From Macrostomum lignano (Eukaryota), in NCBI GenBank assembly GCA_002269645.1, contig NIVC01000835.1, forward strand, positions 371,523-435,522: a DNA stretch of 64,000 nt, in the 5' to 3' direction. The notes beneath the pieces are model-generated. The model saw only the letters and a program-made list of their open reading frames with translations, was not told the DNA's origin and ran no database searches. Each line of letters opens with the position of its first letter. Position 1 is the stretch's first letter. Positions 6,310-64,000 of the stretch are shown piece by piece. The translations under genes and the position numbers were made by a program.

Positions 6310-24878
<18,569 letters not shown>

Positions 24879-39800: not shown

Positions 39801-42800
39801 TCTCGGAAACACTCTCCCGGGGAATCCCAGAAACATTCCTACGGGGAATTCCGGAAACACTCTTACGGGAAATCCCAGTAACACTCCTAAGAGGAATCTC
39901 GGAAACACTCTCCCGGGGAATCCCAGAAACATTCCTACGGGGAATTCCGGAAACACTCTTACGGGAAATCCCAGTAACACTCCTAAGAGGAATCTCGGAA
40001 ACACTCTCCCGGGGAATCCCAGAAACATTCCTACGGGGAATTCCGGAAACACTCTTACGGGAAATCCCAGAAACATTCCTACGGGGAATTCCGGAAACAC
40101 TCCTACGGGGAATCCCAGAAACACTCCTACGTTGAATCCCGGAAACACTCTCCCGGGGAATCCCAGAAACATTCCTAAGGGGAATCCCGGAAACACTCTC
40201 CCGGGGAATCCCAGAAACATTCCTACGGGGAATCCCGGAAACACTCTTAAGGGAAATCCCAGTAACACTCCTAAGGGGAATCCTGGAAACACTCTTACGG
40301 GAAATCCCAGAAACACTCCTACGGGGAATCCCAGAAACACTCTCACGGGAAATCCCAAAACCGCTCTACGAGGAATCCTAAATCACTGCAACGGGGAATC
40401 CCGGAAACACTCTTACGGGAAATCCCAGTAACACTTCTAAGGGGAATCCCGGAAACACTCTTACGGGGAATCTCAGAAACACTCCTACGGGGAATCCCAG
40501 AAACACTCCTACGTTGAATCCCGGAAACACTCTCCCGGGGAATCCCAGAAACATTCCTAAGGGGAATCCCGGAAACACTCTCCCGGGGAATCCCAGAAAC
40601 ATTCCTACGGGGAATCCCGGAAACACTCTTACGGGAAATCCCAGTAACACTCCTAAGGGGAATCCTGGAAACACTCTTACGGGAAATCCCAGAAACACTC
40701 CTACGGGGAATCCCAGAAACACTCTCACGGGAAATCCCAAAACCGCTCCACGAGGAATCCTAAATCACTGCAACGGGGAATCCCGGAAACACTCTTACGG
40801 GAAATCCCAGTAACACTCCTAAGGGGAATCCCGGAAACACTCTTACGGGGAATCTCAGAAACACTCCTACGGGGAATCCCAGAAACACTCTCACGGGAAA
40901 TCCCAAAACCGCTCCACAAGGAATCCTAAATCACTGCAACGGGGAATCCTAAAACCTTTCCAAAGGGAATCCTAACATTTCTCCAACGGGAATCCTAAAA
41001 CCATGAAACCCCTCTTCTCAATGGAAAATTCTCCACTGAAACCTCACCATCAGCTCAACAGTAGCAGTCGGAATGCTTCTCTGGTTGATCTTGGCAATTC
41101 GCTGGCAAACCCGCAGAGCCTCCGAGTTGCGCCCGTTGGCCATCAGCCAGCGCGGCGACTCCTCCAGCAGACTGGAAAATTTGTTTGAAAGCTTATGTGG
41201 AATCTCCAGCATGTGATCTCTCTGTGAAGTCCCTAGCTTGTGAACCCTCTAGTTAGCAAAGCGAGCCTCACTCTCCCCAAGCTTACAAGTAGCTGGCCAC
41301 GTAGCAGACGCAGGGCAGGCAGGCGCACACCTGCAGCCAGCGCCAGTGCCGCACAAAGTAGGCCAAGCCAGCCACAGACACGTAGCCGAAGCACCAGTAC
41401 AGCCACAGCAGGTTTGCCACGGCAGCTCGATGCCGGCAGGCGACGAATTCGGCGACGCAGACGGCGGCCAACAGGCCGACGGTGGCGAATATGCCGCGGC
41501 AGAAGTGCAGCGTCAGATAGGCGGGCAGATTCGGGGCGAGACATTCGGCTAAGCTGAGCGACAGCTCGGCAGCGCAGCTGATCAGCACGACTGGTCGACG
41601 GCCGAATCTGAGAGATACATTTTGATGTGAAATTTGTTTAATAGATGTACATTGTCGCCTACTGTTAGTAGCTAGTCTAAGCCTACACAGCAAATACTAG
41701 AATAACTAGTTATGTAACTCGTACTAAAAGTTGTGGAAAAAACTCGAACATCTACTCTTTTTCAGTAGTTTGTCTGCGCAGTGTCTCTTAAAATTTTATA
41801 TGGCAGCTAAAGTTTCTTTTCGTTTCTCAAGAAAGGAAAGTCGCTAGCATTTAACTCGATGTACACAAGTGAACGTACAAAGATGGACGAAACTCAGCCT
41901 AGGGGACAGGCCCAATCTAGCTCAGCCAATCAGAGAGCAGAAAGGAGAGAGGTCAAAGTCAAACACAAGCGGGCAAGAGGTAGCGAAACGGTTTATCGGT
42001 CTAGCTGGGACTGGAGCACTACCCCTTCTCAAGCTCGCTATGCACTCGCACTGGATTTGGGCGCAGCTTCATGCTAATTCAATGGGTCCTCTTATATAGA
42101 AAGCAGGCGGTGATTGTCGCAGCTTTAAAAGCTTCAAGCATTTTGTAAACATTACTTTTATATAAAGGAAAAAAACGAACATTTTGCTACTGAAAGAAGA
42201 GTGAATGAGCATATATTCTGGGGTGTGACACATCTACGAGTAGTTAGTATCCATGGTTTATATCAGAGTATAGTCACAAAGAGAGTTGTCAATCTATAGC
42301 AATATCAATAGCGCTCGATATTCTCTGGCGTCTGGTGTAAAAGCAGAAAATAGCATTAAAAAAGCGACCACTTACTTGTCGGCCAGCAAGCCGAGGACAA
42401 GACCAAATCCAAAGCCCAGAGCGTAAGTGGCAAATACCAATGGCTGCAGGCCGCTTCGGCCGCACACCAGATTCCACTGAATGCAGGGGGAAGGGAGCGG
42501 CAAGGTGTGGGAGACACTAGAATTTATGTTGCGTGTTCTTGTGAGCTTGTACGAGCGTATTGTTAGTGAAATTCAAGTCGCTAGAGGGTGGGTATCCCCA
42601 GTCAGTGGAGGGTGAGTATCCCCAGTCAGTGGAGGGTGAGTATCCCCAGTCAGTGGAGGGTGAGTATCCCCAGTCAGTGGAGGGTGAGTATCCCCAGTCA
42701 GTGGAGGGTGAGTATCCCCAGTCAGTGGAGGGTGAGTATCCCCAGTCAGTGGAGGGTGAGTATCCCCAGTCAGTGGAGGGTGAGTATCCCCAGTCAGTGG

Positions 42801-43623
42801 AGGGTGAGTATCCCCAGTCAGTGGAGGGTGAGTATCCCCAGTCAGTGGAGGGTGAGTATCCCCAGTCAGTGGAGGGTGAGTATCCCCAGTCAGTGGAGGG
42901 TGAGTATCCCCAGTCAGTGGAGGGTGAGTATCCCCAGTCAGTGGAGGGTGAGTATCCCCAGTCAGTGGAGGGTGAGTATCCCCAGTCAGTGGAGGGTGAG
43001 TATCCCCAGTCAGTGGAGGGTGAGTATCCCCAGTCAGTGGAGGGTGAGTATCCCCAGTCAGTGGAGGGTGAGTATCCCCAGTCAGTGGAGGGTGAGTATC
43101 CCCAGTCAGTGGAGGATGGGTCTCAATCACAGGAGGGTCACTGGATGATTTCACTCAAGAAGGTTGGGTCAGGGAAAAAATTTACTTACGTATTTTATTA
43201 GTTATAATTGTAGTTACGATAATGTGCAGCATAGGGCTTTACCTCGCTAGAAATGGTTAGCAGCCATTCGCTGGTGTCGTACACAAAGAGCGAACAAGCC
43301 ACCTTGTCTGCTGTAGAATTTCCATCATTTTGCCAGCACTGCTCAGTATTGGATCTGTCGAGCAATGTTGAGTGATTAAAAACTTCCACAATGGAAGTTG
43401 GAACTGTTTCATTAACATAATCTTCGTCGCTATTCAGGCGCACCGACGAGCGACAGGTAAATTGTGGCTGAATAATTTGAAATTCGATTAGGACCATGTT
43501 GGCGGCAAATTTCCAGATGAATATGGCTACCAGATTAAATAGCATCAGCTGATATCTGCCCAGGCTGCCAATGTGCTCCAGAATCTCCTCGTAGTCCAGG
43601 TGTATCGGTGATGATGACATCAT
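36885..43623 (-). CDS. SLC22-family (organic cation/anion) MFS transporter, 8 exons, 626 aa
   Basis: Exons 43623-43243, 42476-42376, 41607-41287, 41171-41048, 39583-39486, 39384-39167, 37887-37563, 37197-36885 join in frame (1881 nt). Motifs: DYEEILEHIGSLGRYQ, large first loop with Cys and N-glycosylation sequons, SE|WNLVC, ADKFGRR, EESPRWL, LADRLGRR, AEICPTSVRN, LPETRGLPL. Confidence 0.95.
37205..37550. repeat. Two adjacent minisatellites (24 bp and 36 bp) filling SLC22 intron 7
   Basis: TGTGAGACAGTGGGTAATGACCAG x ~5; AATGACCAACTATCCACAAGACACGGAGGGGAGGGC x ~5. Confidence 0.95.
38915..39165. repeat. ~21-bp minisatellite starting inside the exon-6 donor
   Basis: CCATAGCAACCC core. Confidence 0.9.
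39745..40990. repeat. 24-bp minisatellite with a kappaB-consensus core and a 382-bp higher-order duplication
   Basis: Unit like GGGGAATCCCAGAAACACTCCTAC. ORFs 40132-40431 and 40514-40813 are near-identical. Confidence 0.96.
42588..43112. repeat. Perfect 24-bp minisatellite, about 21 copies
   Basis: Unit GGTGAGTATCCCCAGTCAGTGGAG. Confidence 0.98.
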
Positions 43624-44480
43624 GATTGAGCGACTAACCAACTGAGCTCTGCCGTCGGAGGTCCAACTAGATTGCTCTGGTCTTCTTCACCCAACTGTTC
43701 TGGTGGCTTTCTTAAATTTTCCCCGCTTTTAGCAAGCCTACTCTGTGCTGGAGAGGGCAGGGGAGAGGAGTCGGCAAACAGATGAGAAAGGCTGCCTGTC
43801 GATTAGCTCAGGTGCCTGTGTACATGTACACTGTACATCTGTCGCCCTTATACCGCGCATATGTGGGGAAGAGAATAAAGGCTGTATGTAGCTACACATA
43901 TGGATTAATTGTAAGCTGAGCAGGGTAGAAATGGGAAGAGGACGAGAGATGGAGCGCTTTGGGGACGAGAACTAAGGACGATGAATGCATGACCCAGTAT
44001 AGCTCAGCTGAGAACGCGGCGAGAGAAAGCAGCAGTAGCGCACAAGTCTCAGAAAGGAACTCGGGTCTCAAGACTTTAGCTGACCATTGGCACTGATATT
44101 TGGACAAGAAAACTAATGGACTCTTTTTTGATATTTTGTTTCTTTCCAGGCAGACAGTGTAGTCCCGCCCAAGAGCTCTCTAGTGAGATCCCGACAAAAT
44201 TGTGAATGAATTCGTACAGAAAAATTCAATATAAAAGTGTGTTGTTAGCCAACAAAGTCGCTAAAAAGTGCATTGCCTAGGAGACGTTCTGAAGAGTTTT
44301 ACTGTCTGCGACTCTGAAGCATCTACAGGAATCCAGGATGCTTTTAGAATGACTCGTATTTGAGAATTTGGAGTTACTATATTAGTCTTAAGAGGCTCTA
44401 GGAATAAAAGTAGCGTTTACAATACGTTTTACCGGCGTTCTTGAGTCTTAAAGCGCTTCAGCGTCATTGTCACTGTAGAG

Positions 44481-44815: not shown

Positions 44816-46662
44816 CAGTGGCGTCATTTGCGACGTAACGGTCATTATAAGCGGCCCTAAATGGTCTGCTGAATGCAAGGTGCCACTGGGTGCGGTCATC
44901 CTGCACATGCTCCACCAGAAGACCGTCTGGGGGAGCACCAAGAGATTGCGGGACGCCGTCACTGGGAACCAGGATCATCATGAGGTCGGCCTTTTCTAGA
45001 GATACTGCAGCTTTAATAGTGTCGGCAAGCTGGTAGAGATGTTGCTCAGTTATCGCATCTTTGCTTGTGCATGCTTTTATTGCAGTAACCGTTACAGGGA
45101 GCAACTGATTAGACGGCTGAACCCGAGACCGACCGTAAAAATGTATATTTCCAAGAAAATTTTATTTATCAGGCTGATAGATGATTATGCAGTGATCTAC
45201 TACTGATTTCAGTGATTGAAAAGATCAGAATTTAAGCTGGGGCTTCCATATACCAATAAAACAAAAGACAGAGCTATAGAAATCACAGCTTTTATTGAAC
45301 CAAGATTGGGCACACTTTGATTTTTTCCCTAAATACTGCCGCCCTGTGACGACTAGAAAACTCTGCTTAGGCCTAATTTCTATTAGCTATATCCATGAAA
45401 CAATTAACAACTTAGTTTATAGGTCACGTGGGTAGTGGACTGTGTGGTGAATATGCTTCTAGACATAATTAAAGTGGCCTTGGACCTTGTCAACTCTAAG
45501 TCTGCTATCTACACGGTATTGTATATTGTTATCGGCATTACTGACCTGTACATTTAGGCAGGTCAGGATGAAATACATACATGTACATCCTAAAACGACC
45601 TAAGTTCACTCTTATTCAGTACTAGTTGCCAGATTCAGTAAACTTGCTGCAATTCGCATTGCTAGATAAACCTACCTATATAACTTCTTCTTCTAACTTC
45701 AATGAACCTATATAAGACTCTAGAGCCTGTTAGTGTTGTTGTCAGTTGTCTATGACTTTTGGTTCATTGACATTGCTGTTATATATCACTTTGCAGTTGC
45801 AGAGTTTTATATATTTTTTTACTGGATGCGCTCTCTCTTTTTCTTAGAATAGGCCTATCTATCAAATTTAGTTTTTTTTGATGATGAATTCCCCAAAACT
45901 GAAATTGCACCAGTGCTTACAATAAGATTTTTGGGTTTATCTAGTCCTAGACCTAAGTCTAAAGTTTGCTAATCTATCTAAAACTAGATTAGGCCATTAA
46001 GGCAGGGAAATTTTTTTAGATTAGGGGCCTACTAGTATACTAAATCTAATATCTAGTATCTTATAATATCTAATATCCAATAAGATTTAGTTTTAGTATT
46101 TTTATTAGGCCTAATTAATAAAGTTTAGACTGAAAAGGAAAATTTCAAGTTAAGTTGAAAAAAGACTAGGTCCCTATCATACTTTTTATCTAAAATGTTT
46201 AAAACAATTAAATAAATGAGAATTATGATTTGTATTGGCTATTGGTAAAAAATATATAGTCTTATTACTCTTAATTGCTTGTGTTATATATTATATATAC
46301 TTTATAAATAATTATAATACTTTAAAATATAAACTATATTAAAATTATTTGTCTCTATCTAGCTCATATTTATCTATATAGGTATATGATCAATTTTATA
46401 AAAATATAAATTATACTTCTTTGGTGCCTAATTTATATTTGATTTTAACAAAAAGAAACTTAGCTTCAATTGTAACTTTTACCTTTACTAAATCAATATA
46501 TTAAAAATGGTTTATCAATATCTATCTAGTTTTCATTCTAATAGTCTAGTTGCAATTTTTTTATCTTCTTTTTCTATTGCCCTTTTTTCTTTTTTCCCTC
46601 TTTTTCCCTCTTATTTACCCTATTTATTTTGTTAAATTATAGAATGACTCTATAAGACAGGC

Positions 46663-46834
46663 CATACATGTGCAACCTTGGGAATCACCCGGCCGTTTCT
46701 ATTGGCAACACACGCATGTAAGTCGCTATTGGCTGAAAGCAGTCATGTGACTACTATTCTGTCCAATAGCGACATACATGTGTGTGTTGCCAATAGAGGC
46801 GGCCGAGTGAATCCCAAGGTTGTGCCCAAGCATG
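46663..46834. mobile_element. 172-bp palindromic MITE with an 8-bp TSD (hAT-like)
   Basis: About 75-bp arms forming a near-perfect hairpin (46673-46822); AGACAGGC duplicated at 46655-46662 and 46835-46842. Confidence 0.8.
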
Positions 46835-47343
46835 AGACAGGCTATTAAAAGTTATTTCAATATTAACCATCAAATTCTAAGGCCAAAATATGATAATTTA
46901 GTTTGAAATTCCATAATCAATTATTAAACTTTGGTAATGGCTACTTCAAGCATTCTTATATTTAGTTAATTTAACCTTGCATTTTGTTGACTAAATTCAC
47001 TAAAACAAGTAATATTGATTCCATACTGCTATCATATTATAAATCACAATTTGCAGCTAGTTATCAGTCAATAAGTGATATAAATATATATAAAAATAGA
47101 ATACCTTGGTGCATTGCCTTTGGTGACATTGTCCTACAACCATTATAGGAATCTCTATGCCTTGGGGTTAGAGTCAGACCCTAATTAGATGACTAATTGG
47201 GGATAGGAGCAGTTTGGCAAAAAATGCATTCTGACTTTCACATTATGACAATACTGCCCTCAGCCAATGGCTATTTGTGTATAATTTCTCCGTTTGGCTT
47301 GACGCCCCCCCCCCCCCCCTGCAGTGTTTGTCTGCCCGGCCCA

Positions 47344-50300
47344 ATGTCGGACAGTTGGCGCCACCGTCAGCAGCAGTTGGCCGGCCGCCTTCAGTCGGCT
47401 GTGCTGGCTGGTGATGAGGCTGAGGCTGGCCAAATAGTTGAGCAGCTCTGCTCCGGACCCGCCGCTGGTGTCCAAGTGTATCCCGATCCAGACAATGGCT
47501 CGCTAGCATCGTCTATTGAAGCTGTTCAACTAGTCAGCATAGTACTGCAGACCAGATGCGCCCGCGTCAGCCAGCCGCTTCACCTGGCCATGCCGACCGT
47601 TGTTGATTCTGTCCCCGTCACCATCGCCGATTTAAAGCGCGAACTGCTGCTTAGATTCGACATCCCGACTCGCCTGCAAACCTGCATAGTTGGCCAAGAG
47701 ATACCGCCAGACGAGGCGCCACTGAATGGACTGGCAGCCGAGTCAGAAACCTTGGCTGGCTGCACTAGCAGGCTACCGGCGTCACGGCTGCTGGTTCGAG
47801 TCTACGTGCGAGCTGTTGGCGACTGGCGACCGCCGCCTGCCGAGCTGCGAAGCCTAAAAGAAGCTGTCTGCGACGCCAAGGGAAATTGCAACAGATTTGA
47901 GCTGGTTAATCCTGTGCAATCCTGTCCGCCACCTCCTTCTGATAGTAGTGTAAGTGACCTGCAGAGTGCTATTGTGGCTGGAACTGTTCTCTCCTTTTCT
48001 TTGTAGGGAATCCTAACCCTCTAAAAATCCAGTTGCCATGTCTCTGAGAATCCATTTGCCATGTCTCTGTGAATCCAGTTGCCATGTCTCTGAGAATCCA
48101 TTTGCCATGTCTCTGAGAATCCAGTTGCCATGTCTCTGAGAATCCAGTTGCCATGTCTCTGAGAATCCAGTTGCCATGTCTCTGAGAATCCAGTTGCCAT
48201 GTCTCTGAGAATCCAGTTGCCATGTCTCTGAGAATCCAGTTGCCATGTCTCTGAGAATCCAGTTGCCATGTCTCTGAGAATCCATTTGCCATGTCTCTGA
48301 GAATCCATTTGCCATGTCTCTGAGAATCCAGTTGCCATGTCTCTGAGAATCCATTTGCCATGTCTCTGTGAATCCAGTTGCCATGTCTCTGAGAATCCAT
48401 TTGCCATGTCTCTGAGATTACATTTGCCGTGTCTCTGAGAATCCAGTTGCCATGTCTCTGAGAATCCATTTGCCATGTCTCTGTGAATCCAGTTGCCATG
48501 TCTCTGAGAATCCATTTGCCATGTCTCTGAGAATCCATTTGTCATGTCTCTGAGAATCCATTTGCCATGTCTCTGTGAATCCAGTTGCCATGTCTCTGAG
48601 AATCCATTTGCCATGTCTCTGTGAATCCAGTTGCCATGTCTCTGAGAATCCATTTGCCATGTCTCTGGATTCGGTTGTCATTTCTCTATTGCTATTTCTC
48701 TTTTGCCATTATGTAAAATGTACTTATAAAAGCGATCGATAATCTGCAATCAAGCGTCATATCTGAACGAATTCACAGCCGCCAGGCTGGGACTGTCCGA
48801 CTTGCACTTTTCGCAACAAGCCGAGTCGGCTGGGCTGCGAGATTTGCTCAGGAGAGCCGCCACCCGGCTACGAACCGGTTGTTGAAGCCGAAGATGAAGC
48901 GCGGCGGCTGCAGCTGGAGCGGGAGTTTCTGGAGCAGGTGAGTGAAGATTTTCAGTTTTCACTCATTATTGACCTGGTTTACACTGATATGGGACGCATT
49001 CACACTGATATGGGACGCATTCACACTGATATGAGACATTCACACTGATATGAGACATTCACACTGATATGAGACATTCACACTGATATGGGACATTCAC
49101 ATTGATATGAGACATTCACACTGATATGGGACATTCACACTGATATGAGACATTCACACTGATATGAGACATTCACACTAATGTGCGACATTCACACTGA
49201 TATGAGACACATTCACACTGATATGAGACATTCACACTGATATGAGACACATTCACACTGATATGAGACACATTCACACTGATATGAGACATTCACACTG
49301 ATATGAGACACATTCACACTGATATGGGACGTATTCACACTGATATGAGACATTCACACTGATATGGGACATTCACACTGATATGAGACATTCACACTGA
49401 TATGAGACATTCACACTGATATGAGACATTCACACTGTTATGAGACATTCACACTGATATGAGACATTCACATTGATATGAGACACATTCACACTGATAT
49501 GAGACATTCACACTGATATGAGACATTCACACTGATATGGGACACATTCACTGATATGAGACACATTCACACTGATATGGGACACATTCACACTGATATG
49601 AGACACATTCACACTGATATGGGACACATTCACACTGATATGAGACACATTCACACCGATATGGGACACATTCACACTGATATGAGACATTCACACTGAT
49701 ATGAGACATTCACACTGATATGAGACATTCACACTGATATGAGACACTGTGTTCAGATCTAGGTTTCTTTAGCAGTGTACGTCATGACACGTAGTTTTGG
49801 CCTTCTGAATTTGGACCCCGATTGCCAAATTGGTACCCTGTTTTTTTCAAACTAAATGTTATTTTTTTGGGCTCCATGGTTTCTGTAATCCATATTTTAT
49901 TTAAAGCATCAATAAAGGGTAAAGGGTAGATTAGAGGTATTAAGGTATTATGTTTAATTTCTAAATTTTCCACTCATGTCAGCTGCATAAAAAGCTCAGA
50001 TTCAGATTTTTACGTGATTGGTACGGATAGAAACTTCATAGACATTCAAATGTCCATTGATTGGTATATTTTGACATCTACATACAAATTAGTAATATTG
50101 TTTCACTGTACAAGTGCACTGGAGAGTTCACTTGAGCTTTCTAAGAATCTAACAGAATTTTAACTATCAGATAAGCTTCTGAGTATACAGTATACTAATA
50201 TTGTTTATGTTTTTTCTACAAATTAATAACAGCTCTAATAACTGCAATCTTTTCATAGGTTGCTGGCTGGCAAGTTAAAGTGCAGCTTCTTTTGTTTGCT

Positions 50301-53300
50301 AAAAGTTTAATGAATTTGCGTGTTGTTCTACACAAGTTTTATAACAATATCCTTTGCCTGATTGGCCGCTTTTGCAATACTGCTATTAATAATATACTAC
50401 TGCTAATGAGTAGTTATCAGCAATAGTCTCAGATTCCAATAGGCCATTTCAATTATCTATCTAAAATTTTAACAATATAATCCGACAGCAACTTTGCTAA
50501 TGTTGCTGAAACGAAACACATTTTCTTGTTAATTTCTTTTTTTGTCTTTTAGCAGCAGCAGCAGCAGCAGCAGAGCAAAGACGCACAAAGCCGCGACAGA
50601 GCCAGATCAATGAGGCCGCTGCCTTCGTTGCCGTCGGGGAAAACTGCACTTCCACGACTGCCGCCTCGTTGCAGTAAAAATTTGTCGAATCTGCCAACCC
50701 AGAGTCAGAATCTGCCGTCTGCCAGTTTGAATCTGCCAACCCAGAGTCAGAATCTGCCGTCTGCAAGTTCGAATCTGCCAACCCAGAATCAGAATCTGCC
50801 GTCTGCCAGTTTGAATCTGCCAACCCAGAGTCAGAATCTGCCGTCTGCCAGTTTGAATCTGCCAACCCAGAGTCAGAATCTGCCGTCTGCAAGTTCGAAT
50901 CTGCCAACCCAGAGTCAGAATCTGCCGTCTGCCAGTTCGAATATGCCAACCCAGCGTCAGAATCTGCCGTCTGCCAGTTCGAATCTGCCAACCCAGAGTC
51001 AGAATCTGCCGTCTGCCAGTTCGAATCTGCCAACCCAGAGTCAGAATCTGCCGTCTGCAAGTTCGAATCTGCCAACCCAGAGTCAGAATCTGCCGTCTGC
51101 CAGTTCGAATATGCCAACCCAGCGTCAGAATCTGCCGTCTGAAAGTTCGAATCTGTCAACCCAGAGTCAGAATCTGTCGTCTGCAAGTTCGAATCTGCCA
51201 ACCCAGCGTCAGAATCTACCATCTGCAAGTTCGAAACTGCCAACCCAGCATCAAAATCTACCGTCTGCCAGTTCGATTCTGCCAACCCAGAGTCAGAATC
51301 TGTCGTCTGCCAGTTCGAAACTGCCAAAAAAGCGTCAGAATCTGCCATCTGCCAGTTCCATTCTGGCATCCTTGCGTCAGAATCTGCGCCAAAAACCGTT
51401 GCCGCCGTCGAAGCCGCCGCCGCAGCCGCCTCCGCCAACAATAAATCGGTTGCCAAGTACCGGCGGACTGCCTCGTCCGCCGCCGCCGCCGCCTCCGCCG
51501 AAGCCACCGAAGCCGACGATTGATCGCGCTAGGCCGGCTTCGAACTCGCCGTCGCCGCCGCCAGTCTGGAAGCCGATTCGAATCGAGCCCAAGCCGCGCC
51601 GGGTCATTCAATTCGGAGCTGGCGAATCGGCCAGCCCGCCTGTGGAAACGGATGAACAGGGCAGCAAAGATGAGAGTGAACTCTATGCCAGCGTTGCTTC
51701 CGGTCCTGCAGAAGCAGCAAAACTAGCAGAAGAAGAAGACAAAGAAGACGATGAGGATGCATTTTTTGACCGAGCAATGGACGCTCTTCGCGCCAGATCT
51801 ATGGCTATTCGAAACAAAGCCGATCAAGAGCGGCTTCAACATCTTATAAACAGGCATGGCAGTGACGGTTAACTTTAGTTTTTTTGTGTTTCATTTTAAT
51901 TTCTTCTAGACTTTCATTTTGTTTTTATATATTGGCGCCAAAGTCTTTTGGGTTCGTTGTAAATTTTTATCGCAATATGCTATTAGTACTACTGCCTTTA
52001 TTGTTTTTATTGTCGGTTAGAAAAATCGACCTTAACTTTTGTGCTAATCATGCTTATCTGTTTTGCTTCCCAGACTATATGTCTTTTTACATCTATATGT
52101 TTCCTTGGTTGCTTGTAAATTTGAAGGGCAGGGTGAGGTGTATAAATCCTACATTACATATATTGAGGTGACATGTCTATGTCATAGATATTGGGGTCAG
52201 ATGTTTATGCTCTGCATCATCGATAGGAGTGAGATGTCTGGGCCCTGCATCATAGATAGGAGTGAGATGTCTGGCTGGCCCCTGCATCATAGATAGGAGT
52301 GAGATGTCTGGCTGGCCCCTGCATCATAGATAGGAGTGAGATGTCTGGCTGGCCCCTGCATCATAGATAGATGTGAGATGTCTGGCAGCTGCATCATAGA
52401 TAGGGGTGAGATGTCTGGCAGCTGCATCATAGATAGGGGTGAGATGTCTGGCTGGCCCCTGCATCATAGATAGATGTGAGATGTCTGGGCCCTGCATCAT
52501 AGATAGGGGTGAGATGTCTGGGCCCTGCATCATAAATAGGGGTGAGATGTCTGGGCCCTGCATCATAAATTGGGGTGAGATGTCTGGCTGGCCCCTGCAT
52601 CATAGATAGGGGTGAGATGTCTGGCTGGCCCCTGCATCATAGATAGGGGTGAGATGTCTGGCTGGCCCCTGCATCATAGATAGGGGTGAGATGTCTGGCT
52701 GGCCCCTGCATCATAGATAGGGGTGAGATGTCTGGCCCCCGCATCATAGATAGATGTGAGATGTCTGGGCCCCGCATCATAGATAGGGGTGAGATGTCTG
52801 GCTGGCCCCAGCATCATAGATAGGGGTGAGATGTCTGGGCCCTGCATCATAGATATTGATATGTAAAATAGATATATTAAAGTCCTGTTTTGCAAATATA
52901 GTCATTTGTTTCAGTGTGCATATTCTTACCGGATTATCCCACAGCTGATTATGCCAGCCCCCTCTATTTTTCCTCTCGTGTCGAGCAAACTCGCCTCGCG
53001 AAGCCTTGAACAGCAAGCATCGCATTTGTTAATATACGAGCTACTACTCGTGTACAGAAATTATTCTGTTTTGATGTATCAATTTTTATGTATTCCCTCT
53101 GCTGTGACCAGTGAGTTGGCTTAAATTGGTAATAAAACAGCTATATTGGCAAATATTTAGATTTAAGCTGATTGTTTTTGCATTTTGCATGAAAATATGC
53201 CCCGACATTTGTCTCTAAACTTTGTAGACATTAAGCAACCATAAACCCCCTTTTTGTTGCTGTTGCTCCAATTTATTTGTTTTCGGTTCAACACTTGACA

Positions 53301-56300
53301 GCTTAAACAGTATGCATTAATTCGCTTACAAATATATTTTATTTATAAGCGCCATTTTTGGTCTGAAAGACCTTGGAACAAATATTGCTTTTTCACCAGC
53401 TATAATCTTTAACAACACCTTTAACCCTAACTGCGAATACACGACATTCAAACGACTGTTATAAGAATTATAAACCAATAATCACGTTTTTTTCGAATTC
53501 TGAGCAATGAGCAACTCATGTTTAACTTAGTCTAAACGATTCTCGCGAGGGCTTGCTATTTCAGTTTTAAAGGGCTATAGATTACAGAAGCACATGATGC
53601 AGAAGTCATGATAAAGTCCTGTTGAAAACAATTGCTTTTCAAGTAGGTCCTTTAACGACCCGTTCACTGATAGTGAAGCTCAGTCAGTCCCTCGATGACA
53701 AATCAAGATCAGTTTAGTTCATTTGTAAATTCATTAGCTCAGTTCACCAGTGGCACAATTTGAGTCTCAGTTTTTATCAGTGACGCAATTTGAGGCACAA
53801 TGAATTAGCGACACATTTTGAGGCCCACTTTCATTAGTGACACAATTTGAGGCTCACTTTCATCAGTGACACAATTTGAGGCTCAGTTTTTATCAGTGAC
53901 ACATTTTGAGGCTCACTTTCATCAGTGACAAATTTTGAGGCTCAGTTTCATCAGTGACACAATTTGAGGCCCAGTTTTTATCAGTGACGCAATTTGAGGC
54001 ACAATGAATTAGTGACACATTTTGAGGCTCACTTTCATCAGTGACACAATTTGAGGCCCAGTTTTTATCAGTGACGCAATTTGAGGCACAATGAATTAGT
54101 GACACATTTTGAGGCTCACTTTCATCAGTGACACAATTTGAGGCCCAGTTTTTATCAGTGACGCAATTTGAGGCACAATGAATTAGTGACACATTTTGAG
54201 GCTCACTTTCATCAGTGACACAATTTGAGGCTCAGTTTTTATCAGTGACACATTTTGAGGCTCAGTTTCATCAGTGACACAATTTGAGGCCCAATTTTTA
54301 TCAGTGACGCAATTTGAGGCTCAGTTTTTATCAGTGACGCAATTTGAGGCTCAGTTTTTATCAGTGACGCAATTTGAGGCTCAGTTTTTATCAGTGACGC
54401 AATTTGAGGCTCAGTTTCATCAGTGACACAATTTGAGGCTCAGTTTTCATCAGTGACGCAATTTGAGGCCCAGTTTTTATCAGTGACGCAATTTGAGGCA
54501 CAATGAATTAGTGACACATTTTGAGGCTCACTTTCATCAGTGACACAATTTGAGGCTCAGTTTTCATCAGTGACGCAATTTGAGGCTCACTTTCATCAGT
54601 GACAATTTGAGGCTCAGTTTTTATCAGTGACGCAATTTTGAGGCTCACTTTCATCAGTGACAATTTGAGGCTCAGTTTTTATCAGTGACGCAATTTGAGG
54701 CTCAGTTTCATCAGTGACACAATGTGGCAAATTAGGCAAAAAATTAGGCAAATTCAACACGCTTGACTCAAAGCCAGCAATGTGGCTTTGCTATATCACA
54801 CAATGCCATGTAATAAAGATTTATATTACCGTTGCACTCTGTCAAACAGCAAATGCCAACAATGCCAACACTCATCATGCATTACCAAACACAGCAAGAG
54901 CGCCAGCGCAGTCGCAATCTCAGTGCGCACCTGGCCTTGGCAAACTGTTCATTAATTCCGGCCAAGCAAGATTTCGAATGCCCGATCTGCATCACGGACG
55001 TATCGGCAGAGTGCGATGCGGACGGCATTCAATTGCGCGACTGCGGCCACGAGGTGTGCCGAGAGTGCCTGCGCCAGCACCTGCTCCACGCCGACTCCAT
55101 GCCAGTCCGCTGTCCGCACGATCAGTGCCAGCAGACGGTGACCGATTCGGAGGCCAACCAGTTGCTAACCAGTCAAGAATTCGACCGGTTGCAACGGTTG
55201 GGCCTTCGACAAGCCGAAGCTGTCATACCCAACACGTTCCACTGCGTGGCGCCTAACTGCGACGCCTTCGTTGAGCTGGCCGAAGATGTTAACAGCTTCG
55301 AGTGCATGCTGTGCGGCCTGCACAACTGCGTCACGTGTCGGGCCTCGCATCCGGGCGTCAGCTGTCGGCGATACCAGAACCAGCTGAGGATTGACGCTAA
55401 GAATAATAAGGAGGCCCAGCTCAATCTGACGCACCTGGAGGTGAGCGCTGCTGCGGCTGGGACAGGGGCCTGAGGTGGATTAGTGATAGGGGCCTGAGGC
55501 GGATTAGTGATAGGGGGCTGAGGCGGATTAGTGATAGGGGCCTGAGGCGGATTAGTTATATAAGACTGAGGCGGATTAGTGATATGGGACTGAGGCGGAT
55601 TAGTGATAGGGGCCTGAAGCGGATTAGTGATAGGGGCCTGAGGCGGATTATTTATATGAGACTGAGGCGGATTAGTGATATGGGACTGAGGCGGATTAGT
55701 GATAGGGGCCTGAGGCGGATTATTTATATGAGACTGAGGCGGATTAGTGATATGGGACTGAGGCGGATTAGTGATAGGGGCCTGAGGCGGATTAGTGATA
55801 GGGGACTGAGGCAGATTAGTGATAGGGGCCTGAGGCGGATTAGTGATAGGGGCCTGAGGCGGATTATTTATATGAGACTGAGGCGGATTAGTGATATGGG
55901 ACTGAGGCGGATTAGTGATAGGGGCCTGAGGCGGATTAGTGATAGGGGCCTGAGGCGGATAAGTGATAGGAGCCTGAAACGGATTAGTGCAATAGCTAGA
56001 AGCCTGAAATGGATTGGTGATACGGGCCTGAGGCGGATTAGTGATACGGGCCTGAGGCGGATTAGTGATAAGGGACTGAGGCAGATTAGTGATAGGGGAC
56101 TGAGACAGATTAGTGATAGGGGACTGAGGCAGATTAGTGATAGGGGACTGAGGCGGATTAGTGATGAGGGACTGAGGCGGATTGATTAGTGTGATAAAAC
56201 TGATAGGATTAGTGAGATGAGATGAGGCAGATTAGTGATCGGCTCAGCGGGTGCCGCATGGCGGGGCTCAGACTCGTCTAATGAAAGCAACACAAAGCAA

Positions 56301-56544
56301 TTGCTTTTATTCACCGCAGAAAATGGTGAAATCCGGCGAGGCAATGAACTGCCCGAACTGCCAGGTGTTCCTGCAGAAGAAGGAGGGATGCGACTGGCTG
56401 GCCTGTTCGATGTGCCAAACCGAGATCTGCTGGGCTACCCGGGGACCCAGGTGGGGCCCAGGCGGCAAAGGCGACACCTCCGGAGGCTGCAAGTGTCGCT
56501 TGAATGGACGGCTGTGCCATCCAGAGTGCCAAAACTGTCACTGA
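47344..56544 (+). CDS. RBCK1: RBCK1/HOIL-1L RBR E3 ligase (LTM-UBL-NZF-RING1-IBR-RING2), 4 exons, 511 aa
   Basis: Exons 47344-47949, 48779-48937, 54895-55440, 56320-56544, all phase 0 (1536 nt). [23 protein letters not shown]; [23 protein letters not shown]; [24 protein letters not shown]; RING1 CPIC...CGHEVCREC; RING2 QKKEGCDW with the catalytic Cys; HOIL-1-type C-terminus [18 protein letters not shown]...CHPECQNCH. Confidence 0.96.
48022..48668. repeat. 23-bp minisatellite (RBCK1 intron 1)
   Basis: Unit GAGAATCCA(G/T)TTGCCATGTCTCT. Confidence 0.96.
48980..49748. repeat. 19/21-bp minisatellite (RBCK1 intron 2)
   Basis: Unit GAGACATTCACACTGATAT, with optional CA. Confidence 0.96.
50553..51872 (+). 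CDS. In-frame alternative terminal exon in RBCK1 intron 2 (poly-Q, 13-aa repeats, poly-Pro, acidic tail)
   Basis: Strong acceptor TTTTTTTGTCTTTTAG|CAG in phase 0, compatible with the NZF-exon donor at 48937. 439 open codons to TAA. No phase-0 donor seen near the end to rejoin RING1. Confidence 0.7.
   Translation, partial: QQQQQQQSKDAQSRDRARSMRPLPSLPSGKTALPRLPPRCSKNLSNLPTQSQNLPSASLNLPTQSQNLPSASSNLPTQNQNLPSASLNLPTQSQNLPSASLNLPTQSQNLPSASSNLPTQSQNLPSASSNMPTQRQNLPSASSNLPTQSQNLPSASSNLPTQSQNLPSASSNLPTQSQNLPSASSNMPTQRQNLPSESSNLSTQSQNLSSASSNLPTQRQNLPSASSKLPTQHQNLPSASSILPTQSQNLSSASSKLPKKRQNLPSASSILASLRQNLRQKPLPPSKPPPQPPPPTINRLPSTGGLPRPPPPPPPPKPPKPTIDRARPASNSPSPPPVWKPIRIEPKPRRVIQFGAGESASPPVETDEQGSKDESELYASVASGPAEAAKLAEEEDKEDDEDAFFDRAMDALRARSMAIRNKADQERLQHLINRHGSDG
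50680..51395 (+). repeat. 39-bp in-frame coding repeat ([14 protein letters not shown]), about 18 copies
   Basis: Unit AATCTGCCAACCCAGAGTCAGAATCTGCCGTCTGCCAGTTCG-like; length stays a multiple of 3 with no stops. Confidence 0.93.
52215..52855. repeat. 33-37-bp minisatellite
   Basis: Unit CCCTGCATCATAGATAGGGGTGAGATGTCTGG(CTGG)C. Confidence 0.93.
53750..54722. repeat. ~30-bp minisatellite with higher-order structure
   Basis: Unit ATCAGTGAC(A/G)CAATTTGAGGCTCAGTTTTT. Confidence 0.94.
55465..56190. repeat. 24-bp minisatellite (RBCK1 intron 3)
   Basis: Unit GAGGCGGATTAGTGATAGGGGCCT. Confidence 0.96.
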
Positions 56545-58535
56545 AAAGTACTGGTTGGGTCAATGTACTTTTAGAAAAATTATGTGCCAGAATTTTCACT
56601 TTATTAGTATCCGTGTTAAGATAATGCGCTTTTAACAGCCTGGTTTGTACTCATTACGTACTGTAGCCTTATAATAGTTAATTTTGAGTTTCTTTGTTTC
56701 AATGAAACTGTGCTCAGACTGCAACCAAGACTATCTGTGTGCATAATTTTTAGCTTAGTCTAAATTTATATAGAAATTGCCATTTTTCAAAACTTTCTAT
56801 TCCGCCGATGAATATCGCTTTTAATTGTATGAGCGTGCATGTACATCCGTGAATTCTATTTTCTACTTGCATTGCCTGCAGTGACTCCAGTGAGTCACAG
56901 AATTCGCGCATTCAATCAAGTTTTATTTCTCTGGGAAATTTGTTTTATATTATAAAATGTTTTTCTTTAATTTTGCTACTTGCTCACCAAAGCTATATTT
57001 TCCTTGAAGTATTGTTGCATCCAATGTAGTCCACGACTGTCGCTTCTACTTTATATGGGTCTTTAAATACTCTAGTAAAATTGCGAAAAATATTCTAGCT
57101 ATTTATACTCGTAAAGTGTTGGTTTATCATATTTTTATGAATGATAATTTTCATGAGAAAAAAATTATATTCTTATTCTTGTAATATACTGTATTCCTTG
57201 AATGATAAAAAACAATGCCTTTCTAAACATTCCTAAAATACAAATGACTACTCTTAAGGAATATCTCACATGAAAACTTTTAAAAGCTATAGGACCACAG
57301 AGTTTCATGACCTAAAGAGACCTTAAAAAGCTACGAGTATTTTTAAAATCAAGCACGGATCCAGAATTTTACCACTCAGATACTTCAATTTCCAACTCCA
57401 ACTCAAAGAAAATTTTTATCTGCGATAAGACTATTCAGACGCTGAAGCGATTGCTTGAAACCAAGGAGAAACGAAATCTGCATGTGTAGTGCTATTAACG
57501 ACAATAAAGGAAGTGCAAACTCTTGAAGCCGATTTTCAAGCTCCCACGGTGTCGTGTTTTGTCCGTGGCCAAAATTTTGTATAAAAGCACGCGCTTCTAC
57601 CTCATGTTTGATACTTTAAGTGTAGGCTTCTTTTTCATAATGAGTGCAGCCTTTACATTGTATGGTCTTTGGCTGCAGCAATAGTGCAAAAGAAGCGGCT
57701 GTCTCGTTTTGAGGTACAAAAACAATTTAGAATGTCTCAGCTCGTTGATACACTCGACACGAGCCGGAAAGCCGTATAATATAGGTTTAAATAATAGTTA
57801 AAACAAAAGGAATCAAATTTTAAGCAAAGAAATAAAAAAGTAAAATTTATATTAAGTAAATTTTTTATTTTTTAGTTTTTTAAAACGAAGTAGCAATTTT
57901 TTTATTAACTGGTAAAAAAAGTGTTTTGCTTTGAGCATTGCAGAAAAAACTTTGTGACTGTTTATTTATTCTTGACTTTTTTTTCTGCGTTCTGCAAGCA
58001 AGCAAGGCAAGGCATCGTATATCATTATAGAAAATTCAGATTAGTTAATACGGAATTGATTTTCTCCTTTTTCGTTATAAAACTCGGTAGTTGTCATTAC
58101 CTGCTAATTTATATACTTAATCACTCGTCAGAAGTTTTAATGTACTGTTAATGTCTTTCTTTCACGACTCTAAAAATAGGTAGGCCTAATGGAAGGATTG
58201 AGTGGTGATGATAATGTAATAGTACATTAAATAATTTTGTCATTTTATATAAAATATACTATTCGTACATGAAACATTTAGTGGGTGTTTTTATTTTTGT
58301 TCTTCCTTTTTTTATTCCCTTTTTGAAATTATTCAACCTGTTTAAGTTTTCTAATTTTAAGTCCAGTTTTTAGCTCGATAATGATGGACATTTTTTATTA
58401 GGCCTATAGTCAATGATGACACAATTTTAGTATATTTGACTATATAGATAATTCGCTTTTTCATTTTAATACAATATTATTAGACTCAAAAGTTAGAACT
58501 AGATTCATTCTAGTTTAGTATTCACTATTCATTAA

Positions 58536-62502: not shown

Positions 62503-63288
62503 ATGGGCACCAGCGCCGAGGATGTCAGTCCTAGTCGGCCGCAGCTTTCCTGTCCGTCTGTTTGTCCTCTGTGCGGCAGCGGAGTTCGCATAGCTCAGTG
62601 CGGCTGGATGCGAGCAATGCCAGTGTGCGACAATGCCCAGTGTCTGTACCCTATGGTGTCCGAGCTGCCTGCGCCAAACCTAGCCAGGCCCTACACAGAC
62701 ATGCCAGCTAGTCCGCCAGCTGCTAGTTCATCTTCTCCGACAGCTAAATTGATCATTCCGATGCTGACAGCCAGGCTGTATCTATTGAATCAGTTAGCCA
62801 TCTGCCAGTGGAACCAGATGAAGTGTTTGTTCACACAATGACCGAGCCTGATCGGTCTGGTCCGTTTACTGCCGCCGCGCTAACTACTGTTCTCTGCGGT
62901 CCTGTCCAGCGGCGAGCCAGTGCGGCAGCTTCAACTTCATCCGGCACCCTGGCCGCGTGCAGCCGCGCCTACGCTAAAGCGCTGCGACTAACCAGAGCGT
63001 CGTTGCACCCGGCGCAGGTCTCCTCTGGACGAGTTTCAACGAGGCGTCAGTTTCGCAATTTGGAACTTGTCGGCCTGGCCGATATTGAGCGGTCGGTGCT
63101 GCGCGAGCTGGACTCGCTAGATAGATTAGTGGCTAAGCCACTCTCCCTAAGCGTCAGCGATGTTCGCGACGATTTTTATGAGACCGCGCATCGGCTATTG
63201 AAATCCGACAAGCGATTGGCTAAACAATTCCAGTCTGTTCACACCCTGCGCCAGGTCTGCACTGTGTGCTTTAAGCAGCACGTTAGCC
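62503..63288 (+). CDS. USPL1: USPL1-like (SUMO isopeptidase, peptidase C98 family) exon with an apparent 1-nt frameshift near 62746
   Basis: CPLCGSGVRIAQCGWMRAMPVCDNAQCLYPM resembles the USPL1 N-terminal CxxC...CxxxxCxYP motif. VSDVRDDFY..AHRLLKSDKRLAKQF.......CTVC resembles the USPL1 EVRDEIF...FPLLLK.ETHIEKLF......CSQC segment (comparison from memory). TTCTTCGCAG acceptor before the ATG; GTAAGT donor at 63289. Confidence 0.6.
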
Positions 63289-64000
63289 GTAAGTAGATGA
63301 ATAATTTTGTTTTTTAACACACATGCCCAATAATTAGAAAGTCAGTGCGCTGACGCCTGTGTGTGCTCAGAAGTTAGCAGAATGAGTAGAATTGCCTCGG
63401 CGCTGAGAGTTCGTTTTCGTGTGAACAATTACAGCAATTGTGATTTTGGGTCCAGATCAAGGTTTTAGTCTAGTAAGATTCTTAGACAGTGCTTAACAAA
63501 AACTTAATGGCCATTTTTTGTGTTTCTGAGAACACAGCGTTATTAACGCTCGTATTGGGTTTGTTAAGCGTCAGAATTGCAGTGCCATTTGGCATCCTGC
63601 GGTCCAAGTTCAGATCTTTAAACAAGTTTCAAAATTCAAAATCAAACAAAATATCAACACCTCTCTACCTCTACCCTTTACACTGCTAAGTCTCCAAGTC
63701 TCTTTGACAATTGATAGAAGTCTTGAAAATCCTAAAATCCATATAATTATAGAGTTATTAATGCCTGAAACAGAGGTTAAAATACAAAAAATATATAATT
63801 TAAACCAAATAATATCCAGCTTAGAAAAAAACAGGGTGCCAATGTTTAACCAAGGTTGAAATTTAGGATAACAAATTAATTTAACGCACGCTATGACAAA
63901 AAGCCAGTGTAAGACAGAGCAGTACTTCATTAATTTTATTACCGTTTCGTATTCGCAATAATTAAAAATGCACAACTACTCTCATTTGTTAGACAAAAGC

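Follow-up and report, generated by a model that had tools for sequence, protein, structure and literature searches.

The RBCK1 locus of Macrostomum lignano

RBCK1, the gene for HOIL-1, contains a long open reading frame (ORF) inside its second intron in the flatworm Macrostomum lignano. We analysed this ORF and its host gene within a 64,000-nucleotide stretch of contig NIVC01000835.1 (assembly GCA_002269645.1, positions 371,523 to 435,522 of the forward strand), referred to below as the window; positions are those of the window unless another locus is named. An earlier note on this DNA had proposed that the ORF is an alternative last exon, through which the HOIL-1 locus could supply a SHARPIN-like subunit of LUBAC, the complex that assembles linear ubiquitin chains.

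The host gene corresponds to BOX15_Mlig014017g1 and consists of four forward-strand exons, with every intron in phase 0. Exon 1 (coding sequence 47344-47949) encodes the putative LTM-UBL region in 202 codons and ends in phase 0, exon 2 (48779-48937) encodes the NZF and the helix after it and also ends in phase 0, exon 3 (54895-55440) encodes RING1-IBR, and exon 4 (56320-56544) encodes RING2 and the stop. Intron 2 spans 48938-54894 (5957 nt), and the donor of the NZF exon that opens it, CAG|GTGAGT at 48938, scores 12.1 bits. The 511-residue product is 100% identical to the M. lignano proteins PAA76243.1 and PAA53909.1. Vertebrate RBCK1 proteins match it at 33-37% identity across 98-100% of its length and, together with the order of its domains, an NZF followed by RING1-IBR-RING2 (RBR), this similarity identifies it as HOIL-1. 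Pfam matches include Zn_ribbon_RanBP (34.8 bits), zf-C3HC4 and IBR, and the NZF matches the solved HOIL-1L NZF (PDB 3b08, E=1.6e-8). The LTM gave a weak Pfam match (13.4 bits, E=0.074), the UBL gave no Pfam ubiquitin match, and no PDB sequence match was obtained before residue 199; the LTM and UBL are therefore putative assignments drawn from the full-length alignments.

Upstream of the coding sequence lie a CCAAT box, AGCCAATGG (47262-47270, with CCAAT at 47264-47268), and a TATAAT (47280-47285), both on the forward strand, which may act as promoter motifs. The former is one of seven RRCCAATSR matches in the window. It lies 55 bp upstream of the putative 5' acceptor of RBCK1 itself, which is formed by a 15-nt C-run and CTGCAG (47310-47324, forward strand, pyrimidine content 0.9) at the annotated start of the coding sequence. 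The corresponding GenBank proteins (P0121, P0001 and P0122) are labelled "5' partial" and start 1-4 nt past the AG of this acceptor. The arrangement of the 5' end (47262-47325) suggests that RBCK1 itself may undergo spliced-leader trans-splicing, with a very short outron.

The locus is present in three near-identical genome copies, namely the window (L003), L001 and L004. Window positions 46000-57000 match contig NIVC01000835.1 of the Mlig_3_7 assembly (L003) with 100% identity. Between the window and L001, the RBCK1 coding sequence shows 0 synonymous differences in ~1.5 kb, where ~4-5 would be expected, and the introns differ by ~1.1%. Exons homogenised by gene conversion, synonymous sites under selection, or introns affected by assembly noise are candidate causes of this contrast.

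An open reading frame within intron 2

The ORF lies on the RBCK1 strand at 50553-51872 and is intact in all three copies of the locus (3/3). Its frame runs for 439 codons (50553-51869) to a TAA stop (51870-51872). Its upstream in-frame stop is the TAG of a candidate splice acceptor, and the base next to that AG already belongs to the open frame. This acceptor, a pyrimidine tract ending in TTTTAG (50528-50552, forward strand), reads GTTAATTTCTTTTTTTGTCTTTTAG|CAGCAG at 50552|50553, is conserved in L001 and L004, and has a NAGNAG alternative at 50555|50556. It is 85% pyrimidine over 20 nt, compared with 55-70% for the three cis acceptors of RBCK1, and no other acceptor-like site in the 5957-nt intron reaches at least 85%.

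The predicted product is basic (isoelectric point ~10.4), disordered and rich in Ser, Pro, Gln and Asn. Directly 3' of the acceptor, (CAG)7 (50553-50573) encodes Q7; this tract has 6 units in L001 and carries a 351-bp in-frame insertion in L004. The first in-frame ATG (50610-50612) opens a 420-residue ORF beginning MRPLPS. A 42-bp tandem repeat follows (50685-51387, 16.7 copies), whose 14-residue unit consists of two 7-residue halves, NLPTQSQ and NLPSASS. It is succeeded by a proline-rich segment with many CCG codons (51388-51557, GC 0.66) and by a unique C-terminal segment (51558-51869) comprising an acidic patch and then a predicted long helix (~51708-51866). All of these features are on the forward strand.

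No donor above 4 bits occurs anywhere inside 50553-51872, and the first good donor-like site, AGG|GTGAGG (52133-52141, forward strand, 8.6 bits), lies 260 nt past the stop and overlaps a TATAAA hexamer at 52141; the ORF would therefore be a terminal exon rather than a cassette. When 48937 was joined to 50553 in silico, a 694-residue product lacking the RBR was obtained. The anatomy is thus that of an alternative last exon, with an acceptor in phase with the NZF exon, an in-frame stop and no internal donor. In these respects the earlier note was accurate: the strong phase-0 acceptor, the 439 open codons in the frame of the NZF exon and an LTM-UBL-NZF-plus-tail product of about 694 residues without RBR are all present in the sequence, and the overlooked donor leading on to RING1, which the note named as a possible refutation, was not found within the ORF. 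Its 13-residue repeats are in fact units of 14 residues, and the resemblance that it saw between DQERLQHL and the start of the RING1 exon yielded no alignment at E<=100.

Coding signatures and variation among genome copies

The length of the ORF means little by itself, because minisatellites abound in the window whose periods are multiples of three and which give ORFs of 200-440 residues. More informative is the non-repeat tail of 161 codons, which is stop-free solely in the frame of the ORF, whereas the other five frames hold 1-8 stops (p=0.011 from dinucleotide shuffles; 0.015 from a Poisson estimate based on those five frames); for the unique C-terminal segment, the shuffle p for being stop-free is 0.027. 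The last 104 codons show codon-type three-base periodicity (position 1 G=0.45, T=0.08; p=3e-5), which persists when the acidic GAA-like stretch is removed (p=0.007), while none was detected in three flanking intron segments (p=0.28-0.94). GC content is 0.46-0.66 inside the ORF and 0.31-0.35 in the flanks, and it changes at the acceptor and again at the stop. From the sequence without an alignment, AlphaFold2 predicted one long helix over the last ~53 residues (pLDDT ~91). Openness beyond the chance level, three-base periodicity and a composition like that of exons thus coincide, and we consider it probable that 50553-51872 is a genuine coding exon. The ORF is probably a young or fast-evolving exon, unannotated and restricted to the species. 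Two routes fit the anatomy: cis-splicing from the NZF exon, which would connect it to HOIL-1, and trans-splicing of a nested gene, which would not.

The tandem repeat has 16.7 copies in the window, 15.7 in L001 and 9.7 in L004. Outside the repeat, indels between copies measure 3, 6 and 3 bp, all multiples of three, compared with 1, 2, 2 and 7 bp in the flanks; this frame-keeping pattern carries little weight, because two of the three indels sit in triplet repeats. The L004 insertion (13283-13636 of that copy, contig NIVC01003003.1, equivalent to window 50571-50574) comprises 351 bp, in frame and stop-free, within the (CAG)n tract. Over its first 51 residues it matches, with 100% identity, an M. 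lignano fragment that UniProt names Nuclear transcription factor Y subunit (P0127). The insertion could represent either a CAG-tract-mediated insertion or gene conversion, or else an assembly chimera. We did not retain it as a sign of selection on the frame, which would be fixed automatically by entry through the CAG tract or by mis-assembly.

Searches for related domains and structures gave nothing of substance. For the ORF, Pfam returned only sub-threshold noise. PDB matches to the streptococcal M6 protein (NLTTENK/NLTDQNK) and to the leucine-rich repeats of SlrP were rejected, as they reflect a coincidental 7- and 14-residue N-L periodicity; the ORF has a proline in every heptad.

A candidate nested gene

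The reading that we tentatively favour is that the intron 2 ORF is a lineage-restricted, weakly constrained coding terminal exon that belongs chiefly to a nested gene with its own promoter. Its anatomy, its coding-type statistics, its orphan status and the lack of detectable constraint are observed; transcription, promoter use, trans-splicing and translation are what we infer. A promoter of the CCAAT/TATA type would set a transcription start ~40-50 nt upstream of the acceptor, and spliced-leader trans-splicing at 50552|50553 would take off the resulting short outron. The start codon would be either the terminal AUG of the leader (M-Q7-SKDAQ..., 440 residues) or the ATG at 50610 (420 residues), giving a protein in which a variable 14-residue repeat is followed by a poly-Pro stretch, an acidic patch and a helix at the C-terminus. 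Some cis-spliced chimeras of RBCK1 (LTM-UBL-NZF) with the tail would be expected as a by-product, the acceptor lying 3' of the strong NZF donor on RBCK1 pre-mRNA.

About 30% of M. lignano genes are trans-spliced, with a leader that ends in ...TTGCATG (PMC8629364). Translation can start at the AUG of a flatworm leader (Cheng 2006, as cited in PMC9851317), and more than 40 cDNAs of S. mansoni require the leader AUG (PMC9851317). Joined at 50553, such a leader gives ATG|CAG CAG in the frame of the ORF. A nested gene consequently explains the phase-0 acceptor as well as cis-splicing does, because an AUG-ending leader joins in the same frame. A trans-spliced nested gene would need an outron with no cis donor; on the host pre-mRNA a cis donor lies upstream of the ORF acceptor. 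With a pyrimidine content of 0.85, this acceptor is also nearer to the putative leader acceptor of RBCK1 (0.9) than to the cis acceptors of that gene (0.55-0.70).

Putative promoter motifs are found upstream. A CCAAT box on the reverse strand, GGCCAATCA (50359-50367), lies 186 bp upstream of the candidate acceptor and is another of the only seven RRCCAATSR matches in 64 kb; one would turn up in 250 bp by chance with a probability of ~0.027. A second CCAAT (50436-50440) and a TATAAT (50476-50481), both on the forward strand, are closer to the acceptor, at 115 and 70 bp upstream, and offer no more than a hint. A bacterial promoter and terminator scan was disregarded as irrelevant to a eukaryote.

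A comparable arrangement exists in a paralogue of RBCK1 (45% identical; L002 10001-17843). Its intron 2 (L002 13700-14010) contains two perfect AGCCAATCAG CCAAT boxes ~150-180 bp upstream of a CACAG acceptor, a TTTTAAAAAG element, and a 41-codon phase-0 ORF ending in TAG, which the UniProt model A0A1I8IRV9 (P0025) splices in as a cassette. Compared with the window ORF, this short ORF gave no significant match (E=1.0). Intron 2 may thus host a promoter in the RBCK1 gene family, perhaps one common to both paralogues.

Several results weigh against the reading of the ORF as a coding exon of a nested gene. The whole ORF found no match among 5.8 billion proteins, every M. lignano protein set included, and the 120-residue tail found none in a full HMMER search of 1.84 billion representative proteins. 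Between the window and L001, the non-repeat ORF carries 8 substitutions in 617 positions, compared with 27/2377 in non-repeat intron (p=0.68) and 1/1555 in the RBCK1 exons (p=2.8e-4), so that it diverges ~20x faster than those exons. The changes in the ORF tail are 5 non-synonymous and 3 synonymous, and the variants among repeat units (11 non-synonymous to 5 synonymous) agree with neutral expectation. Selection on the ORF is not apparent in this comparison, whose power is low, as the copies differ by only ~1%. Synonymous codon usage is intermediate between exons and introns, and GC content at third codon positions (GC3) of the last 104 codons is 0.44, below all of the nine control exons (9/9); the codon-usage controls included the other likely coding exons of the window. 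The CCAAT and TATA motifs arise readily by chance in AT-rich DNA and argue only weakly for a promoter, and TTTTAG fits the reported YTNCAG acceptor motif (PMC8629364) in part, with TAG in place of the enriched CAG. If translation started at 50610, the open frame back to a phase-0 acceptor would be a coincidence of ~0.14, which favours cis-splicing. Within 1 kb past the stop there is neither AATAAA nor ATTAAA, and TATAAA alone occurs, at +268. The 3' end of RBCK1 likewise lacks a nearby canonical poly(A) hexamer, and we dropped such hexamers as a discriminator between the models, which they do not separate.

The absence of the ORF from the annotation needs to be read with the way that the annotation was made. 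GenBank lists full-length RBCK1 alone, spliced from 48937 to 54895, at all three loci. The M. lignano GenBank annotation dropped transcripts overlapping repeat annotations, and the transcript assembly behind it used an isoform-fraction cut-off of 0.75, which loses minor isoforms (PMC5730564). Its silence on the ORF is uninformative, because a transcript with a 700-bp tandem repeat would have been filtered out, and we accordingly did not count it against expression that neither GenBank nor UniProt proteins include the ORF. The UniProt entry A0A1I8HH98 (289 residues, without RBR) represents no more than a read-through into intron 2. The gene identifiers Mlig014017, Mlig021711 and Mlig017341 were not found in the main texts or supplements of the papers searched.

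Alternative explanations

The nested gene was weighed slightly ahead of cis-splicing, and the two are not exclusive, because on host pre-mRNA the NZF donor can reach the same acceptor; both routes can coexist. According to the alternative-last-exon model of the earlier note, a cis-splice links 48937 to 50553 in a transcript that terminates past 51872, giving the 694-residue RBR-less protein with a disordered tail. Such a protein would be an analogue of RBCK2 and could compete with full-length HOIL-1 for partners. We regard this as possible but doubtful. The part of the model that concerns anatomy stands: phase 0 joins phase 0 in a frame open from the AG, on the strand of RBCK1, through the sole strong acceptor of intron 2, downstream of a 12-bit donor, into a segment that appears exon-like and probably coding and, without an internal donor, terminal. 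Trans-splicing, which the note did not take into account, lets a nested gene fit that anatomy equally well. The ~0.14 coincidence of frame applies under a nested gene with an internal ATG and therefore speaks for the cis-spliced form, and the RBR-less architecture has precedents in a separate, transcript-supported M. lignano gene and in mammalian RBCK2. Against it, the annotation gives the full-length form in all three copies, although its filters would remove a short isoform; the tail is unconstrained and variable in length among copies, unlike the RBCK1 exons; the promoter-like motifs upstream point to independent transcription; and no canonical poly(A) signal is close by.

We think it rather unlikely that the ORF is non-functional, that is, an intronic assembly of (CAG)n, the 42-bp minisatellite, and (CCG)n-like and (GAA)n-like tracts whose unique parts are open by luck and in which a T-rich run happens to end in AG. 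Minisatellites in the window do generate long ORFs, some of which run more than 100 codons into adjoining GC-rich DNA, and a selection effect is at work, the best-looking ORF having been picked out of 64 kb. Divergence at the intron rate, the neutral ratio of non-synonymous to synonymous changes, the lack of a homologue, also within M. lignano, the low GC3 and the intermediate codon-usage score all agree with this explanation. However, it leaves several features to chance: through the 161-codon tail, no frame but the one carried on from the repeat is open (p ~0.011; Poisson 0.015), periodicity remains without the acidic stretch and is lacking in the flanking intron, the GC island stops at the stop codon, and the sole strong acceptor of the intron falls exactly at the 5' edge of the ORF.

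The broader proposal of the earlier note, that the locus yields a SHARPIN-like LUBAC subunit, received no positive support. In its fullest form, the HOIL-1 locus would regularly make an RBR-less LTM-UBL-NZF protein by alternative last exon, with a tail that recruits partners, as a non-catalytic or dominant-negative LUBAC component and an independently evolved counterpart of RBCK2 and SHARPIN; we judge this improbable. The N-terminal Sharpin_PH domain of SHARPIN (PF16764) has no match in RBCK1 exon 1 or in the ORF, and the tail matched neither SHARPIN nor any other protein. The note had also suggested searching the genome for a separate SHARPIN, and a stand-alone LTM-UBL-NZF gene without RBR does exist, so that no substitute is needed from the RBCK1 locus and the idea of one is weakened. 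This gene (L002 3490-7273, contig NIVC01003120.1) lies 2.7 kb upstream of the RBCK1 paralogue and encodes 392 residues, both as annotated and as reconstructed. The protein, which shares 28% identity with the N-terminal half of RBCK1, has an LTM (27.3 bits), a UBL-like region, an NZF (25.1 bits) and a tail that is disordered and Q/P-rich. This tail contains a possible 4E-BP-like eIF4E-binding motif, RRICYSRDFLLSL (Pfam eIF_4EBP, 21.9 bits, below the cut-off), which is unusual in combination with a SHARPIN-type architecture.

Finally, inclusion of 50553-52132 between the NZF and RING1 exons as a poison or cassette exon, with the stop at 51870 leading to decay or truncation, is highly improbable: the donor-like site at 52133 (AGG|GTGAGG, 260 nt past the stop) would allow it, but several GT sites, of which it is one, occur where a minisatellite begins or ends, and 1.58 kb would be unusually long for an internal exon.

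Other features of the window and significance

Every RBCK1 intron contains at least one long minisatellite (periods 23, 19, 37, 30 and 24 bp). Minisatellites were located at 48019-48667, 48981-49746, 52212-52855, 53743-54723 and 55464-56183, and at many sites in 1-47000. Those with periods divisible by three produce long ORFs without meaning, for example at 13041-14360 on the reverse strand (439 residues) and at 7419-8659 on the forward strand (407 and 410 residues). Other likely coding exons lie at 11563-12048, 14828-15367 and 41283-43641 on the reverse strand and at 62503-63296 on the forward strand; among them are ORFs resembling Q/H-rich transcription factors, a gene resembling a transporter, and a downstream gene truncated where the contig ends.

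As a feature the ORF is of an ordinary kind, and a role for it in LUBAC is speculation. If expressed, it would be one more taxonomically restricted, repeat-built gene or isoform in a flatworm genome known for many, and a neat case of one acceptor able to take either an upstream exon or an AUG-ending leader in the same frame. The locus also illustrates a limit of the public annotation, in that the GenBank models of the M. lignano genome systematically omit transcripts overlapping tandem repeats. For LUBAC biology, the more useful side finding is that two diverged HOIL-1 paralogues occur in M. lignano alongside a separate RBR-less LTM-UBL-NZF gene.

Comparison with known systems

In the way that it would be translated, the window ORF would resemble the spliced-leader ORFs (slORFs) of flatworms, which start at the 3'-terminal AUG of the leader, and in its position it would resemble same-strand nested genes; with the leader joined at 50553, it would likewise start in frame.

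The cis-spliced form would have its closest parallel in RBCK2, reportedly an RBR-less splice variant of mammalian RBCK1 that inhibits RBCK1 and is said to have been described by Tokunaga et al. in 1998 (FEBS Lett 435:11) and by Tatematsu et al. in 2008 (JBC 283:11575). In both cases a single RBCK1 locus would yield a product with the N-terminal half but not RING1-IBR-RING2, and an RBR-less RBCK1 isoform is not new as a concept, because RBCK2 is known in mammals. The M. lignano junction, however, is putative, and its 439-residue orphan tail with a variable repeat is unrelated to the C-terminus of RBCK2; the two would be of independent origin.

With SHARPIN, the hypothetical isoform would share LTM-UBL-NZF and the lack of an RBR. 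It differs in having no Sharpin_PH and no similarity in the tail, and its N-terminal half is that of HOIL-1 itself rather than of a SHARPIN orthologue. Many NCBI proteins named "sharpin" (from birds, reptiles, fish and amphioxus) also have RING-type Pfam matches; many "sharpin" proteins of birds, reptiles and amphioxus, and ~700-residue fish "RBCK1" proteins, combine Sharpin_PH, LTM and NZF, some with RING/IBR. The statement that SHARPIN lacks the RBR may thus hold only for some lineages.

The architecture proposed for the ORF isoform is found in M. lignano in the stand-alone gene, which differs in being a transcript-annotated gene at another locus, with a tail that bears no relation to the window ORF and carries a 4E-BP-like YSRDFLLSL motif. 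Because of this gene, a SHARPIN-type architecture is not confined to vertebrates, and it needs no ORF exon to arise.

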